From contig NW_025767079.1 in NCBI RefSeq assembly GCF_003918875.1, forward strand, positions 4,898,001 to 4,962,000: a stretch of 64,000 nucleotides of DNA, read 5' to 3'. Positions 20,319 to 60,173 of this stretch are shown here, one piece after another. How positions within the stretch are numbered: the first letter of the stretch is position 1; each line of letters starts with the position of its first letter. The notes under the pieces were generated by a model. It was not told the DNA's origin. It saw nothing but the letters and a program-made list of their open reading frames with translations, and searched no databases. A program made the translations under genes and the position numbers. This DNA comes from Haliotis rubra. Lineage: Eukaryota.

Positions 20319-21379
20319 TATACACTACATCCATCACACACTAATCTGTGTTTTCATAATTTGCCATGCTTTTGTGGGATTATATAGGTACTTTAAGATT
20401 ACATTCATAAACTCCTTTTACATTTTACATAGCAATCCTCAAGTAATGACCACTGGCGGCAGACCGTCCTAGATTTCATCCCAGACACAATTATAGGATG
20501 AGGTGCAACTTGGTTCCAATGTCAACACGCACCCTGGTACAAGTTCAATCATGTTCCTTACATCGTGCCCTTGGTTGCAGAACTCATAAGTGTATGTATA
20601 GGCTAAATACAAAATAACCTCTCAAGCCTGAAACTATGTTTGCCATATGACAGTCTCTTCCATCATGCTTATAATAAAGGACAGGGATTCAGGGACCTTA
20701 TACAAGTATTACAGAGGCAAACTTCTGTTATCTTATAACCCCTAAATTTGAACTCTACTGAATATTATGACTATTCCTAGCTGTTGGCATCAGATACAAT
20801 GATCGAAAGAACACATTCAATAAACCTGTTCTAATTTCTAAAAAGCCAAAAAATTTGCTATTATGAACTCAGCAAAACGCAAAGGATCCCATTTAGTTTC
20901 TGCCACAGCTCAGTAACAGGACTTTTACCATGAAAACAGATTCTTGGATGACATTCACAAGGCCAGTCTTCTTTTCATGCTTATGAATTTTAACAAGAAA
21001 AAATAGTTTGGGTAAGTACACAAATCAAAAATGTATTTCATGGGATTTCTTATTATTTTGGTAGGTAAAAATATAAAAAAATCCTGGCCTGATTGGGTCT
21101 TAAAAATACCATTATTCTAAAGTCTAAAAGCAACATTTTATTGTCAATTTTCTTAATCAAAGAGATCCCAACCGTTATTTCATTTTCCTCTTTCATGAAA
21201 TATAACCTTTAAAGATCAGCAAAAAGCAGCAAACAGCACACTCAGAAAGCCCAATGATAAGGCATTACATGAACTCTGACAAAAGCAGCACAAAACTGGC
21301 ACCAACAAAACCAATCCTTGAAAATGTTGAAGCATTCAAACAGAACTTTGAACAAGAAGGTGTTGGAGAAACACCTTGA

Positions 21380-24300
21380 CTACACACTTGCAGATGATGA
21401 CTGAGATGACTCGATGCCACTGGCATCAGATTCAACGCCAGAATCACTCATCTCTCGGACAAGCTTCTTCACAGTGTCCCTGTCAGCATTTCCAAGGTTG
21501 TTATTTTCATCCTGGGATATTTTTGTCTCGATATTCTGAGATTTTAAGGTGTCTTCCTTTTCTTTGGTTGATTCTTTTGGTGAAGATTCCATCTTTGTTG
21601 TTTCTTGTTCTTTCTCTTGCAAAGATTTTTCTGTTTCTTGAGCAGTGTCCTCTTGAGCTGATTTTACTGCCTCTTCTTTGGATGCAGAAGATTCAGTGAC
21701 TTCATTCTCTTCTGTTGCTTCTGTTTCAGAAGATTCATTCTGTTCAGTGTCATCATCTATTTTATGGTTTGGCGAGTTTTTGCTCGAGTTATCTCCCTTA
21801 GCACTTTCTTCATCTTCACTGACCATTTTGGTTTTCTTTGGAGAGTCATCTTTCTGCAACACAATATGTCAACAAGCACTGAAATCACCTTTGTCTATAT
21901 TGTAATAGTTTTCAAATAAGACTTCTGAATTTTTTGGCTATAAACTTCAATGTGTCCTTTCGAAGATAGTGACTCGAATACCCAAATAGACTCTGTGAAA
22001 TAATTTTTTAGGATCCATCAAACAAGTTTAATCAAGCTGATGAAATTTACAGTTTCCAACATACAATTAGAACTGTTTACAACAGAACACAAATGTAGTA
22101 CAAGCAAAATAGGTTGTACTTGTCTTTAGTCCATTACTACATCAATCAAACATTTGAACACCAGTGACTAACTTGTTGGATGTGTAAATACTAAAGTTCT
22201 GGTAATTTGGAAAGTTTAACTATAAATTGTATACATATATACAGTGGAAGCTGTCAAAACCGGCAGTTGTCCAATCCGGGCAAGTTGTCAACACCGGCAT
22301 AAAATCTCAGTCCTGTCTGTGGCTTGTTCATTTATCATAATTTAAATGTTCTGCAATTCGGCAGCTGTCAATTCCAGATCTTGGCATGAAACGAGCCACC
22401 TGAATATGGTCTTATACTGTAATCAGCGCCGTCTAATCCGGCGCGTGGCAAGGAGTCGGCTGGATGTGTATTGTCACCAATTAATCTTGCATTGAAACTA
22501 CATGGTTGCCGACAAAGACATTTTAATCTTAGTTCAGCATGGGTATACTTGTACATGTAACTGGTGAGTTGACATGCTTTATTGTGATGCAACAACGTAA
22601 ATGAGAGTAACAAAACTTGTTCACTATTAGTCGGAGATAACCGTGTCATCTGTACAATCCAGCACACTGTCTAAACCGGATTATTTCTTTAGTGCCTGTT
22701 TAGACAGCTTTCAGTGTACTTATCCTATCTCCTGGGTGGTTGTTGTGTTGTTTAGCGCCGAACTCAGCAATATTCCAGCTATATGACGGCGGTCTGTAAA
22801 TAATTGAATCTGGACCAGACAATCCAGTGATCAACAGCATGAGCATCGATATACACAATTGGGATATGATGACGTGTCAACCAAGTCAGTGAGCCAGACC
22901 ACCCAATCCCGTTAGTCACCTCTTGAAACAAGCATGGGTTACTGAAGACCAATTCTAACCCGGATCTTCTCAGGTTTGTGGTATCTAAAACTGTGACAGT
23001 CGTACCTGAATCAATTCCCATGGTGGAGGAGCCTGATCCTTGCAGCGACGAAGGGCAAATTTCCACACTCCGAACCCAGACAGGCCTGTCGTGTTCCAGA
23101 ACTTCTCCACAGTGTAGATTCCTGGAGGAGAGTGAATGACATCAATGACAGGGGGATGGGTGAGACAACAGAACATTGGGTGAGTGGGTGGCCGAGGCGG
23201 ATGGTGGATGGGTGCAAGTGGAAAAGGTCAGTGGTGGGTGCTGATTTTTTTATTATTTTATTTTGGGGGGAGTGGGTAAACCTTATTTTATGGTGAAGCG
23301 TCAAAATTGCTCTGGAAAAGAGCAAATACGTAGGTTGCGGTGGCCAATCAAACTTAGGGTCAAGAAAACAGTGTGAACGGTACATTCATTTCAACGCAGT
23401 AACAGCCCGAAGATGACAGATAGAAGCAGTATCCAAATACACTGACTCAGTCATAACCCAGACACTACCCACCATCATATCTGTAGCCTTCTTCAGGAGC
23501 AAACGGACTGTCCAGTTTATAGCCTCTTATAACCCTGACTGGATTTCCGTTCTCACAATTCCTGGACAACGCCAGGTTACCATTGGTCAGGGTCTGGTCT
23601 TTTGACTGGGGAGCTGTTCGCAGGTTCTGTGGATAAATAACGGAGTTAAATCTCATGACCTAAGTTGGAATCAAAGAAAATGTGACAAAATATCAGACTG
23701 CAATATCGTTGTGACGGAACAAATCAACAGACATGATAGTAAGATGTAAATCTGCAGATCTGCAGCTATGGTGGTAATATTCAGATAGCAAGCATTATTG
23801 GAATTTTTTTTTATTGGAGTCACAATTACCCTCCATAGTAATGAAAATAAAGACTACCTCATAAGGTGCCATCAACAACTTGGATAAAAGCTGCAAGTTG
23901 AAAACCCTGTTTACTACAAAATACCAACCTTTGGATTTGACGCTGTTCCTTTTAGATCTCGGCCACCTGGAATAATTTAATTTATAAATTGTACAAGGTA
24001 GTGACCTCGGTTTTAATTTTATTTAAAGTGTTCCCTTAATGAAACATTTATTCCCATTACTTAAGATTATCACAGGAACTCATCTTAATAATTAATTCCC
24101 ATGACATAGGATTATCACAGGAAAACAGCTTAATAATTACTTCCCATTTCTTAGGATTATCACTGGAAACCTGCTCAATATTTACTTCCCATTACTTACG
24201 ATTATCACTGGAAACCTGCTCAATAATTACTTCCCATTACTTACGATTATCACATGAACCCAGCTTAAAAATTACTTCCCATTACTTGGGATTATCACAG

Positions 24301-27300
24301 ACTGACTGCCCAAACCACTTAATTGTCTCTTGTGACCGGCATGGGTTAAAGGGACAAATTTCCAAACATAAAGTATGTTAGTTCATGTACTTGGGTTTAC
24401 CTTCTCCTGTGTAGGTGAAACATTCACCTAGGTCAATATTGTCGTCATATCCCCCAGACAGTGCTACAGAATACGCCCCTTCTTCCCCTCGGTGGATGCC
24501 AGCAACAGTTGGTCTGGGGGCACAAGTTAATGATTATGATGAAGGCAATGATGATAATTACAACTGAAAAAGCACCGAGAATCTAAATAATGTTGACTGA
24601 AAATATATTACCATTATGGCCATAATGCTGAATGAAATTACAAACACAATGTAAATTTGTGTATTTGTTAACGCCGTACTCAACACTTTTCCAACTCTAT
24701 AACAGTGGTTTGAAAAACATCGAGTCTGGAGTTGTCCTCAAGACGCTCACACATGTACAGGTATTCTATCCCAGTGAACGATTTAGTCAACCACCACACA
24801 CCTGTGGATGCCATCTCTACTGCAGTCAATCCTGTAGTTCCAGACTGTACCAATTTCCACACCTACAGGAACCAGAGAGAAACAGGTTAAAAAAACAGGA
24901 TCTATAGATGTGAGTTGAAGAATGTAGTTTTTATGAAAAAATGTAATTTTTTAAGTAAAATTGATATTTTATACTTATCCTGAATCATATGTTATTGCTT
25001 CTTTTTTTAATTTCTTTTCTATTTTTAGACTGTTAATTAGAGAACAATAGGACAGAGGTTTCCACTGTACCTTGGAAGAAAGTGGAGATAGGCAATAACA
25101 TATGAGTCAGGTTAAGGAAAAATATTGAAATTCTGTTGAGAAACCAGAGCATCAGCTTGCAATTTGGCCACTGTGTGAGTAAGAGAGATTAACAGCTGTT
25201 TTGGAAATGTGCACTGGAAAAACAACTCTGAACCAACCTGAAAATTGAAGACATAAGGAGAGTAGGACCATACCTGGCACAGGTCCATAAAATTTGGGTC
25301 TGTTCGGTGAGACTCTCTTGGGCTTGTAATCATCTTCCTCTTCCTCTACACTTCTCCATTCTTCCTCTGAGCCCACCGGCTTAAACATAAACACAAGAGT
25401 GAACCTACATACAGAGATAGGTAATGAAAAATTCCAGTAAATGAATCTTGAATATAATATGTCATTACATCTGCACGTGATTACAAAGGACGGTCTATGC
25501 AAGGGATTACACAATGCCATTTTAGAAAGTGGTCAAATGTAACATATGTTATATTTGGGATTACACTTTCTTAGTAAAGTACAGATTCTAGTACTTGAGT
25601 CCCATCCGGGATTCGAACCCACACCCTCGGGACTCGTCCCAAAAAGTACTAGAATCTGTACTTTACTAAGAAAGTGTAATCGCAAATATAACATATGTTA
25701 CATGCAAGGGATGACCAAGATAACTTTCAAACTGAGCAACATCACAAAAGGCTGGTTGTTTCTCATGTCTCATCACTCAGTTTGAAAAGGAGAGGGCAAT
25801 CAGTTGAGCGAGTTTTAGTATTACGCCGCTTTTAGCAATATTCCAGCGGGGGACACTAGAAATGGGTTTCACACATTGTACCAATGTGGGGAATTGAAGC
25901 AGGGTCTTCGGCGTGGCAAGCCAACACATTAACGACTATGCTACCCCACCGCCCACAATCAGTTGAGATTTGCTGTGAGTTTGATAGTAAAATGAGCATG
26001 AAGACACCATAAATGACAGTTTGAAATATAAAACTTTTAACTATGTTATTTTACAACTAAAAATCTCTGTACAGAGTTACTTCCCTTCTCCCAACTGTTC
26101 TTTCACAAATGACAGTTTGAAATATAAAACATTTAACTATGTTATGGTAATGAAACATTTATCAACCTTGCCCTGGATCCGAGCTGACTTTCTCCTCAGT
26201 CCACGTATAGAGCCACAGTTCGACAGGTCCTCTTCAATCACAATCTTCTTTCTTGGCTTGATATCAATGGGAGCTTTTCGCTTGATGCCTTTCTTGACAA
26301 CACGCCCAAGTGGCTTGAACTGAAAGGGACACATACGCATGAATGATAGTCCTTGTGGAAACTCTACATGCTGTAGTTAAGTTTGACCATAAAAACACAT
26401 TCAGCGCCTTTCAACAGCACTACATCCTCATAGAGACGATAACCATATTTAGCCAGTTTATCATACCGCCATTCTGTTGTGAGTAAGGTAAGATTTTACC
26501 CTGCACCTAGTAATAATCTAACATGGTGGAACAAAGGAATTAATAATAGTGGTTGGTTTGTTGCTCAGCAGTATTCCAGCTATATGGTGGCAGTCTGTAA
26601 ATATTCGAGACTGTACCAGACAATCCAGTGATCAACATCATCAGCATCGATATACACAATTGGGTTACAATGACATGACAAGTCAGCAACCCTGACCACA
26701 TAATCCTGTTAGTCAGGTAATCATAATAGCTATTAAAAAAGTCCTGTACACGCACTTGATCATTTACTTATCCCACAAGGTACCCATTCACTGCTGGGTG
26801 AACAAAGGCAATTTATTAACAAACTCACTTGAAAAGAGTGAGACCACAACTGATGACATGCAGGCTTCATACATTTTACCCTTTCAGGTAATCAAACCTG
26901 TGTTTTAACACTGAGACAACCTCACTGAATGCTGCTACAATATACCCAGGACCAATTCACCACCAAACACCATAACTGAAATTGTCAAAACCAACTGAGG
27001 CCTCAAACACTGAGAAACAACAGACTCATGGTGCCACCATGGAAGAAAAGTCCTTTGGTTACAAGTCCTTTAGTGTTGCAGCTGCCACTAAATGGAACTC
27101 ACTGCCAGACTCCCAGACGCCCAGTCGTTGGAACATTTCAAGCGTCACTTAAAGACTCATCTGTTGTACTTTTTAAGTGACTTTGTACTGCCACCAAGTT
27201 TTACTTTTCCTTGACTCTTGTATGCACCACCCCAGTGGAGCCGAGCGCCATATAAATGGACATTATATTATACATAAACCCAAATTGTGTGATTTGGAAT

Positions 27301-28431
27301 AAAGCAGTGGAAAGAATGGTGACTAATCCATATACCAGGGACAGATTTTCTTTCTAGATGGACCTAAATAGGCATAATAGTTGACATGTCAGAGCCAAAT
27401 AGGCTTGGTGACAACAAACAACATCACTTTTTCATTATGAAAACAACAGTTGGCACTGGACTGTTTTTATTTGAACTGTCAGAACATGTGACAAAAATTC
27501 AAATTGTGAATTAATGCTTTATGGGTAGATTTGGATAATATTCTTATCAACTCATGACAATTTTTATACTGACTGACTTACTAAATGAGTACTCAAATTG
27601 TATTTTGCTCAGTAACAATATACAGACAATAAATGCCATTTAATATATGGTTTGGTCGCAATACTTTATGCAAGGCAAACTGTTTTCCAATATATAAAAA
27701 CATGGCATGAAAACATGCCAAATAAACAAAGTGTTAGATCACCTGATAAGACAGTCATACAGACCCTGAAACAAATATATCAAAGAAAGTCCATGCATCT
27801 CTAGAATATGTGGCAAGTCAAGATGTCCACAGTTTCTGGAAATGAAGAAAGTCTCAGGGTTCCTTTTCATTATATATTTTTTCTTTTTTATTATGAACTG
27901 GGTTTTTTCTGTAAAATATGTTCATTTCAGAGACTAGTTGCTTAAATTGTCTATCGCCTCATATGACAAATCTTTTCAAAAGAACTTAGAGGATAATCGG
28001 CGTAGTTTGGGAGACACACTGCACCCAGGCCGGAAATGGGGGAGGGGGAGAGAGATTAGCAATCACGTGACTGCACCCCCCCCCCTTACGGATCTTCGTT
28101 CGGATCAAAGAGTGGCCCGGCTTATGTTTTCATGATTCATGTTGTACATTGCTTCTTGCACGATGACGAAACAATAACGATCGTGAATAGAATTACGACA
28201 TAATTTACACCAATCGGCTATTATTTGAATACATGCATCCTGCAAAAATTAGGACTTTACAACATCGTGTGAGCGATATTTGTTGTCACTCAAAGAAGTG
28301 TTGTTTAAAGAATACCAACACACACTGATTTGGTGCATCTGCCAACTTACCGGATTCACAAGACCTAATTCTGCCAAAATACGCCGATTATCCTCCAAAT
28401 TCTTCTGTCGTAACTTCTCGTAGCTTGACAT
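21380..28431 (-). CDS. Stand-alone SRA/YDG-domain protein (431 aa) with N-terminal CDCA7/WDR76-like helix and acidic disordered tail
   Basis: Nine phase-consistent GT-AG exons: 28431-28351, 26319-26167, 25379-25274, 24862-24802, 24513-24401, 23966-23929, 23626-23473, 23121-23006, 21853-21380 (1296 nt). SRA core: [116 protein letters not shown]. No UBL, Tudor, PHD, RING or SET exons were found. Confidence 0.9.
22242..22716. mobile_element. Tigger/Tc1-like MITE in an intron
   Basis: TA|CAGTGGAAGCTGTC...GACAGCTTTCAGTG|TA. Confidence 0.7.
24051..24300. repeat. 45-bp intronic minisatellite, ~5.5 copies
   Basis: TTCCCAT recurs at 24051, 24096, 24141, 24186, 24231 and 24276. Confidence 0.9.
25537..25703. 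mobile_element. Fold-back element with ~60-bp inverted arms
   Basis: ATGTAACATATGTTATATTTG...AGTACT and its reverse complement flank a core carrying a B-box-like GGATTCGAACCC. Confidence 0.75.
26990..27272 (+). mobile_element. 3' fragment of a CR1/L2-type LINE
   Basis: Decayed frame reads [20 protein letters not shown]...FKRHLKTHL, the typical ORF2 C-terminus, followed by a tail. Confidence 0.6.
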
Positions 28432-28484
28432 TTTGGCCAATATCTCGTTTGAGCAATCACACTAATGTTTACCACGCCAGGTTA

Positions 28485-28543
28485 TTTCCCGCGGTTACAA
28501 TCACGTGCCTGTCACATGACCAGTCACGTGGTATACATCCGGT
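28485..28543 (-). promoter_or_regulatory. Putative proximal promoter of the SRA gene: E2F site plus three E-boxes
   Basis: TTTCCCGC at 28485-28492, CACGTG at 28502-28507 and 28525-28530, CACATG at 28513-28518, and an ETS-like CATCCGG. All lie 54-110 bp upstream of the ATG in a CpG-richer patch. Confidence 0.5.
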
Positions 28544-30581: not shown

Positions 30582-30790
30582 AATTAAAGTTTGCCTGGAA
30601 AAGAAAGTAAACACTCTTTCTTGGCGATTGTATTTCATTATAATAAGAAAACACAAACAAAACTTTCAAAATTCAAGGCTACATGGCTGCTACTGTATAC
30701 ACCGATATTCATTTAGTTATGAATCAACTGTAATTGGGTATTACACACCCCCTGTGGGGATCGTTCATACTTTATGGCTTGGGGGGGCTT

Positions 30791-31422
30791 CTTATCCACA
30801 AGGGATGCCACTCTGCAGAGCACTTTATGACACCTTAGACAATGAGGACACCCATGCCACTTATCCACAAGGGATGCCACTCTGCAGGGCAATTTATGAC
30901 ACCTTAGACAGTGGGGACACCCATGCCACTTATCCACAAGGGATGCCACTCTGCAGGGCAATTTATGACACCTTAGACAGTGGGGACACCCATGCCACTT
31001 ATCCACAAGGGATGCCACTCTGCAGGGCAATTTATGACACCTTAGACAGTGGGGACACCCATGCCACTTATCCACAAGGGATGCCACTCTGCAGGGCAAT
31101 TTATGACACCTTAGACAGTGGGGACACCCATGCCACTTATCCACAAGGGATGCCACTCTGCAGAGCAATTTATGACACCTTAGACAGTGGAGACACCCAT
31201 GCCACTTATCCACAAGGGATGCCGCTCTGCAGAGCAATTTATGACACCTTAGACAGTGGGGACACCCATGCCACTTATCCACTAGGGATGCCACTCTGCA
31301 GAGCAATTTATGACACCTTAGACACTGAGGACACCCATGTCACTTATCCACGAGGGATGCCGCCCTGCAGAGCAAAGTTTGTTTTGACACCTTAGACAAT
31401 GAGGACACCCATGCCACTTATC
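30791..31422. repeat. 69-bp minisatellite, ~9 copies
   Basis: Unit CTTATCCACAAGGGATGCCACTCTGCAGGGCAATTTATGACACCTTAGACAGTGGGGACACCCATGCCA, with near-identical central copies. Confidence 0.95.
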
Positions 31423-59976: not shown

Positions 59977-60173
59977 NNNNNNNNNNNNNNNNNNNNNNNN
60001 NNNNNNNNNNNNNNNNNNNNNNNNNNNNNNNNNNNNNNNNNNNNNNNNNNNNNNNNNNNNNNNNNNNNNNNNNNNNNNNNNNNNNNNNNNNNNNNNNNNN
60101 NNNNNNNNNNNNNNNNNNNNNNNNNNNNNNNNNNNNNNNNNNNNNNNNNNNNNNNNNNNNNNNNNNNNNNNNN
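59977..60173. other. Assembly gap (N run)
   Basis: 197 Ns. Confidence 1.

Follow-up and report, generated by a model that had tools for sequence, protein, structure and literature searches.

A small SRA protein of Haliotis rubra with an N-terminal helix shared with CDCA7-type and WDR76-like proteins, a candidate adaptor of HELLS

A 64,000-nucleotide (nt) stretch of the Haliotis rubra genome (NCBI RefSeq assembly GCF_003918875.1, contig NW_025767079.1, positions 4,898,001 to 4,962,000 of the forward strand; hereafter the window, with its first letter as position 1) harbours a nine-exon gene on its minus strand (28431..21380). As judged by alignment, its product belongs to an ancient, conserved family of small animal and fungal proteins in which an N-terminal helix and an arginine motif precede an SRA domain. 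The family is uncharacterised in animals; databases already list the gene, with a misleading name. The same N-terminal elements were found on a CDCA7-type protein, on WDR76-like proteins and on several other DNA readers. We tentatively propose, at somewhat below an even chance for the full mechanism, that the abalone protein is a small SRA adaptor which would read methyl-CpG, dock HELLS/DDM1 through the helix and hold the nucleosome through the arginine motif.

The gene was assembled from a six-frame translation of 21300-28500 and a reading of the exon borders, and every intron is of the GT-AG type. The coding sequence (1296 nt) encodes 431 amino acids (aa), exactly the length given by the initial annotation of this DNA, which had been made from the sequence alone; all 431 residues (100% identity) are those of P0164, the NCBI entry 'E3 ubiquitin-protein ligase UHRF1-like [Haliotis rubra]'. 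Record 2 of the run X1 splices 28481-28351 to 26319-26167 and to 25379-25316. Record 1 (1552 nt) covers exon 3 through exon 8 and extends further, and the unlisted gaps in its positions have the exact lengths of exon 4 and of the micro-exon described below. The X2 records are consistent with this splicing; X1 and X2 are taken as transcript data from their spliced contigs, no run being recorded as RNA. The gene is expressed, with exon 1 spliced to the SRA exons. The 5' untranslated region extends at least over 28432..28481 (minus strand; X1 record 2 spans 28351-28481) and holds an in-frame TAG (28464-28462), so that this mRNA has no place for a coding exon further upstream. Additional exons of the UHRF1 type are ruled out by the transcript contigs, with the TAG of the leader upstream of the ATG and the stop codon in exon 9. 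An unjoined exon 1 or extra UHRF1 exons, either of which would have undone the reading proposed in the initial annotation, are therefore not what the contigs reveal.

All nine exons lie on the minus strand. Exon 1 (28351..28431; aa 1-27) contains the ATG and the conserved helix (aa 3-21, with Y4, E5, R8, N11, N15 and L19, followed by G23), and is supported by the transcript, by conservation and by the predicted local distance difference test (pLDDT); it ends after VNP at a GTAAGT donor and not after LGL, as had been annotated. Exon 2 (26167..26319; aa 28-78; transcript and family conservation) encodes a basic linker (KKGIKRK, PRKK) and the arginine motif (aa 68-78), whose RRKSARIQG is encoded by 26196-26170. 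Exon 3 (25274..25379; transcript and Pfam) encodes the acidic patch (aa 79-99) and opens the SRA domain. Exon 4 (24802..24862), an SRA part ending in GIHR, has a length that fits X1 record 1 and agrees with the UHRF1 alignment. The SRA thumb (PTVAGIH) and the base pocket, with N159 and E171, are in exon 5 (24401..24513; Pfam SAD_SRA E 4.6e-8 with the exon alone, and UHRF1 alignment). Exon 6 (23929..23966) is a 38-nt micro-exon with a family-specific insert of 6 residues before the NKR-type finger; the frame between the exon with YTGEG and the exon with NLRTAPQ depends on it, and its length is accounted for in X1 record 1. Exon 7 (23473..23626) carries the N-L-R finger of the SRA domain (aa 185-187) and exon 8 (23006..23121) its C-terminal end, both supported by the transcript and by Pfam with the exon alone (E 4.1e-11 and 3.3e-6 respectively). 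Exon 9 (21380..21853) encodes an acidic, Ser/Thr/Glu-rich, disordered tail (aa 274-431; pLDDT 44-54, poorly conserved in orthologues) and the stop codon.

Genome and transcript contigs disagree at four positions within exons (23536, 24429, 25327 and 28390), most probably through allelic variation among individuals; the change at 28390 affects the third base of codon 14 and is synonymous. In intron 1, at 27977-28014 on the plus strand, 38 nt repeat part of exon 1 in inverted orientation, with 87% complementarity to 28370-28407 and at 355 nt from the genuine exon; this copy may form a pre-mRNA hairpin with exon 1 or be the relic of a local inverted duplication. Within introns 1-3, contig depth at 25368-25925, 26484-26669, 27600-27971 and 24810-24995 was thousands-fold to 100,000-fold above that of the neighbouring exons (DNA-like runs X5 and X6), with many alternative joints; these are high-copy interspersed repeats (transposable elements or short interspersed elements). 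Intron 5 contains a tandem array of approximately 60-nt units (gtgataatc..taagtaatgggaagtaat..) at 24060-24300 (minus strand).

The only Pfam domain in the 431 residues is SAD_SRA (PF02182; aa 109-265, E 2.8e-50), with 170.4 bits against a gathering cut-off of 30.7 and profile positions 2-148 of 148 covered. The Pfam scan of the full protein found no UBL, tandem Tudor, PHD or RING domain around it, and neither a zf-4CXXC_R1 nor a WD40 match. The name 'UHRF1-like' is misleading, since the transcript-bounded protein has no ligase domains; an SRA-only protein hidden under exactly this name is what the initial annotation had anticipated, together with the order helix, basic linker, arginine motif, acidic patch, SRA domain and acidic tail of about 160 residues. 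In an AlphaFold2 model built on 109 family sequences, the helix (aa 3-21) has a pLDDT of 95-97. The linker (aa 28-78) contains 17 Lys and Arg residues (isoelectric point, pI, 11.4) with the arginine motif at its end, while the 158-residue C-terminal tail is acidic, Ser/Thr-rich (pI 4.4, pLDDT about 50) and predicted to be disordered.

The closest solved sequences are the SRA domains of UHRF1 and UHRF2 (PDB sequence search, E 1.5e-48), with 51-55% identity, Z scores of about 21 and root-mean-square deviations (rmsd) of 1.6-2.3 Å; with the UHRF1 SRA-DNA complex 6vcs, the model gave Z 21.8 and rmsd 1.6 Å over 150 residues (54% identity). The thumb Val, the stacking Tyr residues, T479/G480 and the finger Asn and Arg of UHRF1 are conserved in the abalone protein: V137, Y156, Y168, T169, N185 and R187 align with UHRF1 V446, Y466, Y478, T479, N489 and R491. 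Unlike UHRF1 and UHRF2, it has no UBL, tandem Tudor, PHD or RING domain and carries the N-terminal elements and the acidic tail instead. The finger reads N-L-R, with 6 residues inserted before it and without the UHRF1 loop of approximately 15 residues; S481 is replaced by Glu (E171, the family consensus) and D469, in Haliotis rubra, by Asn (N159).

In a full HMMER scan, exon 7 matched 577 proteins, many of which have 300-500 residues and align with it at a constant relative position; among the 150 best representatives, none had the full length and layout of UHRF1. A search with the closest full-length match yielded more than 750 clusters at E<1e-5, and each named cluster contained PF02182 only. 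Named members come from gastropods, bivalves, cephalopods, annelids, a brachiopod, a nemertean and a bryozoan; from hemichordates, echinoderms and amphioxus; from cnidarians and a calcareous sponge; from Daphnia, barnacles, thrips, a leafhopper and sea spiders; from the flatworm Macrostomum (Platyhelminthes); and, among fungi, from chytrids, Pezizomycetes (Pezizomycotina), Geoglossum and several basidiomycetes, including the Tremellomycete Cutaneotrichosporon. No vertebrate was present among the named matches, which does not in itself establish absence from vertebrates. Database names include 'UHRF1', 'UHRF1-like', 'ORTHRUS-like', 'SUVH9-like', 'YDG domain-containing' and 'uncharacterized'.

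The helix motif starts 122 of the 260 proteins retrieved, and its conservation was quantified in an alignment of 123 full-length members. N15 and L19 are conserved in 100% of them, Y4, E5, R8 and N11 in 93-98% and G23 in 85%; positions 4, 8, 11, 15, 19 and 22 share one face of the helix. In the arginine motif (R70-x-S72-x-R74-[LI]-x-G), R70, S72 and R74 are 96-98% conserved, and the linker between helix and motif is variable in sequence and Lys/Arg-rich. The N-L-R finger is invariant (123/123), and the equivalents of UHRF1 V446, Y466, T479, G480 and R484 are 96-100% conserved. At the D469 position, 101 members have Asp and 20, mostly lophotrochozoans, have Asn; at the S481 position, 83 have Glu, 20 have Ser and 12 have Ala. 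The family can be defined by an N-terminal S-x-Y-E-x2-R-x2-N-[ILM]-x2-N-x3-L-x2-L-G-L helix, an RRxSxR[LI]xG motif and an SRA domain whose finger reads N-L-R and whose insert reads GTxxNPK, and P0164 carries every defining feature of this helix-SRA ('Uhf1-like') family. A helix restricted to Haliotis would have spoken against the initial annotation; it is conserved from sponges to amphioxus and in fungi. This conservation effectively refutes the view that the gene is a UHRF1 paralogue in decay or truncated, or an artefact of annotation, without a function of its own: the 'UHRF1-like' name and the UHRF1 and UHRF2 structures as nearest solved relatives would suit such a highly improbable origin, but the mRNA is spliced, the reading frame is complete, and the same architecture is kept from Porifera to Cephalochordata and in fungi, with finger, insert, helix and arginine motif, none of the 150 best representatives having the UHRF1 layout.

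Some relatives deviate in layout. P0127 (Pleurotus djamor) has DUF7923 and CCCH zinc fingers, then an internal copy of the helix, then the SRA domain. DUF7923, CCCH and SRA domains are likewise present in its relative P0065, with the helix pattern unmatched. P0058, from the leafhopper Macrosteles quadrilineatus, is 1109 residues long with about 800 extra C-terminal residues, and P0001 (4396 residues) contains 16 SRA-like stretches.

Next, we considered the N-terminal elements, hereafter the cassette, in other proteins. No Pfam model covers the helix in scans of the gene and the protein. Word-index searches with the N-termini (P0164 aa 1-80, 61 candidates; P0058 aa 1-40, 5 candidates) returned family members alone and were uninformative on CDCA7 and WDR76. 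Searches of PDB sequences with the helix profile and with the single helix gave nothing relevant, and no DDB2 or other DCAF chain at E<=10, indicating that no solved chain carries the helix and that no similarity to the DDB2 H-box was detected. A feature search of the ESM Atlas with aa 1-80, SRA clusters excluded, gave no usable match.

Metagenome contigs were scanned with a hand-made degenerate DNA pattern for Y-E-x2-R-x2-N-[IM]-x2-N-x3-L-x2-L-G. At least 120 loci matched, almost all of them genuine. Ser at position -2 from the helix Tyr, which the pattern did not demand, was present in 69 of 80 distinct open reading frames (ORFs). An RRSxR-type motif followed within 110 residues in 32 of the 80 (1.06 expected from shuffles), in its strict form in 19 (0.16 expected), and always 43-78 residues after the start of the helix. 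Pfam scans of 40 helix-bearing ORFs identified a C-terminal WD40 propeller in the layout of WDR76/Cmr1 (L033, L020, L093, L087 and L076), zf-4CXXC_R1 (L008, E 4e-28), SAD_SRA (L037 and L030), zf-PARP (L071, L014, L079, L091 and L060), the glycosylase fold HhH-GPD (L099), HRDC (L035), PHD with an AAA ATPase (L119) and, in one ORF each, ubiquitin and an HA domain; approximately 20 of the 40 had no Pfam domain. The zf-PARP fingers are of the type that senses DNA nicks, and their fusion to the cassette, like those of HhH-GPD, HRDC and PHD-AAA, belongs to uncultured eukaryotes.

L008 is a class-I CDCA7-type protein, with the TCHWCRQK, CGPC..RYGE and CPACRDICNCS signature and the conserved C-terminal helices. 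It carries the same type of helix (VSYEEQRQRNIERNQNFLSSLGIL), by position and by likeness to the vertebrate sequence a candidate counterpart of the HELLS-binding helix (HLBH) defined experimentally in Xenopus, and a KRQSCRLKG motif. The five WD40 ORFs have the same helix and an RRSxR motif before the propeller; they are WDR76-like by architecture alone, PDB and Atlas searches with them returning generic WD40 and DDB2-like clusters. A profile-profile comparison (hhalign) of the SRA-family N-termini with those of 13 other cassette proteins gave 98.9% probability over 25 helix columns, a figure inflated, like the other helix scores, by the selection of the loci with a family-derived pattern. Human WDR76 and yeast Cmr1 probably carry the same helix: with the helix profile of the family, peptides presumed to represent human CDCA7, human WDR76 and yeast Cmr1 reached 18.9-23.5 bits (20.4 and 23.5 bits for WDR76 and Cmr1 respectively), which is taken as a lead, not as evidence. 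To judge from these comparisons, the N-terminal cassettes of the SRA family, the CDCA7-type and the WDR76-like proteins are homologous, as the initial annotation had supposed, more narrowly, for the helix, and helix and arginine motif form a mobile N-terminal cassette on many readers of DNA marks and DNA lesions. No description of a shared cassette was found in Pfam or in the literature searched.

The helix, of approximately 19-20 residues in the AlphaFold2 models, is an autonomous element, since its pLDDT remains 94-96 when aa 1-100 are folded without the SRA domain. On this ground, and in view of its occurrence on unrelated domains, the idea that the helix belongs to the SRA fold itself was rejected. 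In the full-length model a short strand (aa 33-35) adjoins the helix; the isolated fragment lacks this strand.

HELLS/DDM1 is inactive alone, and CDCA7 is so far its sole defined activator and targeting subunit. Deletion of aa 74-105 of Xenopus CDCA7e abolishes HELLS binding, and the N-terminal part alone still binds (PMC11343034); the surface that receives the helix is coiled-coil 2 of HELLS, a prediction that holds from plants to animals (PMC11343034, PMC12718391). WDR76 co-purifies with the HELLS/LSH orthologue in yeast, Neurospora and human cells and interacts with it genetically in Neurospora (PMC4714748, PMC4389229, 10.1101/650028). Its histone binding maps to residues 1-310, the N-terminal half (10.1101/650028), and the N-terminus of WDR76/Cmr1 has been described as 'unstructured' (PMC4389229). 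In the literature searched, no paper was found that links the CDCA7-HELLS and WDR76-HELLS interactions through a shared helix.

In the mechanism that we propose, the SRA domain would flip out and read 5-methylcytosine (5mC), most likely in hemimethylated CpG, as suggested by the thumb, pocket and finger residues of UHRF1, which are conserved almost completely, and by the published behaviour of the fungal protein Uhf1 (see below). The N-terminal cassette comprises an autonomous amphipathic helix with an Asn-Asn-Leu stripe, a Lys/Arg-rich linker and the RRxSxR[LI]xG motif. By analogy with the CDCA7 helix on coiled-coil 2, the helix would dock HELLS/DDM1, the partner to which the published CDCA7 and WDR76 data point, and the arginine motif and the basic linker would keep the complex bound to the nucleosome, directing remodelling to methylated nucleosomal DNA. 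A HELLS-docking helix joined to a nucleosome-holding basic part is the most economical reading of the cassette. Binding of the arginine motif to the nucleosome acidic patch is suggested by the core RRSARLSA of HMGN: the family motif, often RRRSARI/L, contains or resembles RRSARL, a likeness at the level of the motif alone, the Haliotis sequence being RRKSARI. Like CDCA7, the abalone protein has a putative partner-binding helix and a basic/arginine region followed by a C-terminal reader domain for (hemi)methyl-CpG; unlike CDCA7, its reader is a base-flipping SAD/SRA beta-barrel and not a zinc finger, its helix is at the extreme N-terminus, and HELLS binding, proven for CDCA7, is proposed here. 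From the WDR76/Cmr1-type proteins it differs in having an SRA domain in place of the WD40 propeller.

The single Uhrf1-like protein of Cryptococcus neoformans, Uhf1 (CNAG_00677), is SRA-only, without Tudor and RING domains; it shows selective binding of hemimethylated DNA and helps to maintain 5mC, with H3K9 methylation acting in parallel (10.1101/149385), while the published work is silent on an N-terminal helix and on HELLS. Since the Tremellomycete member P0091 (Cutaneotrichosporon) belongs to the family and has the helix, Uhf1 is probably an orthologue, a candidate fungal counterpart of the helix-SRA proteins. HELLS is present and CDCA7 undetected in C. neoformans, Daphnia pulex, Frankliniella occidentalis and Macrostomum lignano (PMC10538959 source data), and helix-SRA proteins occur in all four lineages (Cryptococcus, Daphnia, thrips and Macrostomum), with several in Daphnia. 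This retention in lineages with HELLS and without CDCA7 concerns few cases and is suggestive only. By contrast, CDCA7, HELLS, DNMT1 and UHRF1 are all present in Octopus, Crassostrea, Lingula and Branchiostoma (PMC10538959 source data).

Several observations weigh against the proposed role. Molluscs keep canonical CDCA7, HELLS and UHRF1 (PMC10538959 source data), leaving no obvious vacancy for this protein, so that an additional adaptor fits the abalone better than a replacement; the initial annotation had spoken of an alternative HELLS recruiter, of which the SRA-only architecture and the conserved, shared cassette stand and the word 'alternative' is the less apt for the abalone. Deletion of uhf1 alone had almost no effect on 5mC in Cryptococcus (10.1101/149385). 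Asn at the D469 position and Glu at the S481 position mean that the base specificity of the Haliotis SRA domain may differ from that of UHRF1, and the strand at aa 33-35, seen in the full-length model alone, that the linker may dock to some extent on the SRA domain. The inflated helix scores and the generic matches of the WD40 ORFs, given above, count on the same side. Finally, a cassette that also occurs on zf-PARP, HhH-GPD, HRDC and PHD-AAA proteins is general rather than CDCA7-specific; it would fit any common chromatin partner, which could differ from HELLS.

The same breadth admits a wider and rather doubtful extension of the proposal, in which the cassette would be a universal eukaryotic docking module for HELLS/DDM1/Irc5 and the nucleosome acidic patch, carried by at least eight types of reader (SRA, CDCA7 zinc finger, WDR76 propeller, zf-PARP, HhH-GPD, HRDC, PHD-AAA and others), and HELLS would be a general remodeller, directed by readers that serve as interchangeable targeting subunits. 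The SRA member would then be the base-flipping methyl-CpG adaptor of HELLS, and could suffice where CDCA7 has been lost, as in Cryptococcus, Daphnia, thrips and Macrostomum.

Unlikely, but the strongest of the competing explanations, is that the cassette is a generic chromatin or nucleosome tether with no dedicated HELLS role: the helix and the stretch resembling a nuclear localisation signal would contact histones or DNA, RRxSxRL would sit on the H2A-H2B acidic patch, and the protein would be a nucleosome-bound methyl-CpG reader that aids the maintenance methyltransferase, like Uhf1 alongside Dnmt5. The 96-98% conservation of the arginine motif suits this explanation, as do variants such as RRRSARI, which contain the RRSARL core of the HMGN nucleosome-binding domain, and the presence of the cassette on many unrelated DNA-reader domains. 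It is also in line with the histone interaction held by WDR76 residues 1-310 (10.1101/650028) and with Uhf1, which works in 5mC maintenance and has no known link to HELLS (10.1101/149385). However, the stripe of Asn, Asn and Leu on one face of the helix resembles a specific helix-helix interface rather than a histone or DNA contact, and the sole helix of this type dissected experimentally, that of CDCA7e, binds HELLS (PMC11343034); as regards the arginine motif, a tether is compatible with HELLS docking.

Two further explanations concern the partner of the helix, and both are improbable. In the first, the helix would recruit another shared partner, for instance DDB1-CUL4 in the manner of the H-box helices of DCAF proteins, and the SRA protein would be a substrate receptor without a propeller, with a UHRF1-like ubiquitin-ligase function at methylated DNA in spite of its missing RING. 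WDR76 has been reported as a CRL4 substrate receptor and co-purifies with DDB1, the L-x-x-L-G-L end of the helix may resemble the ends of H-boxes, and a ligase link would explain the repeated 'UHRF1-like' naming. Yet the PDB search with the helix profile returned no DCAF chain at E<=10, CDCA7 has the same helix and is not known as a DCAF, and the WD40 proteins carry the cassette at a long distance upstream of their propeller, unlike H-boxes. In the second, the helix would be a homo- or heterodimerising coiled coil similar to a leucine zipper, which would pair cassette-bearing readers (SRA with CDCA7 or WDR76) or form SRA dimers reading both strands or neighbouring CpGs. The CDCA7 helix was originally described as a leucine zipper, and a conserved core Asn is typical of register-setting residues in coiled-coil dimers; several Uhf1 molecules also bind per probe (10.1101/149385). 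At 19-20 residues, however, the helix is short for a stable zipper, and deletion of the CDCA7e helix abolishes the binding of HELLS (PMC11343034).

Outside the gene, a long repeat with ORFs open on both strands lies at 30628-31395 of the window; its unit of approximately 23 residues (THATYPQGMPLCRAIYDTLDSGD) occurs about 8 times, and the whole is probably a minisatellite rather than a gene. A run of N is present at 59977-60173.

We consider the Haliotis rubra protein a putative CDCA7-like adaptor with a different reader domain, for which architecture, conservation and shared helix hold and HELLS recruitment is the part we infer. Hundreds of entries named 'UHRF1' or 'UHRF1-like' lack ligase domains, a systematic mis-annotation that bears on studies of the presence and absence of the methylation machinery. 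The cassette shared with WDR76-like, PARP-finger and glycosylase-fold readers offers one testable explanation for the long-known and unexplained WDR76-HELLS interaction, and also for the roles of HELLS in DNA repair. If the SRA protein carries a HELLS-docking helix, it would provide a second, base-flipping route for remodelling at methylated DNA in invertebrates and fungi, and could explain how HELLS and DNA methylation were kept after the loss of CDCA7.

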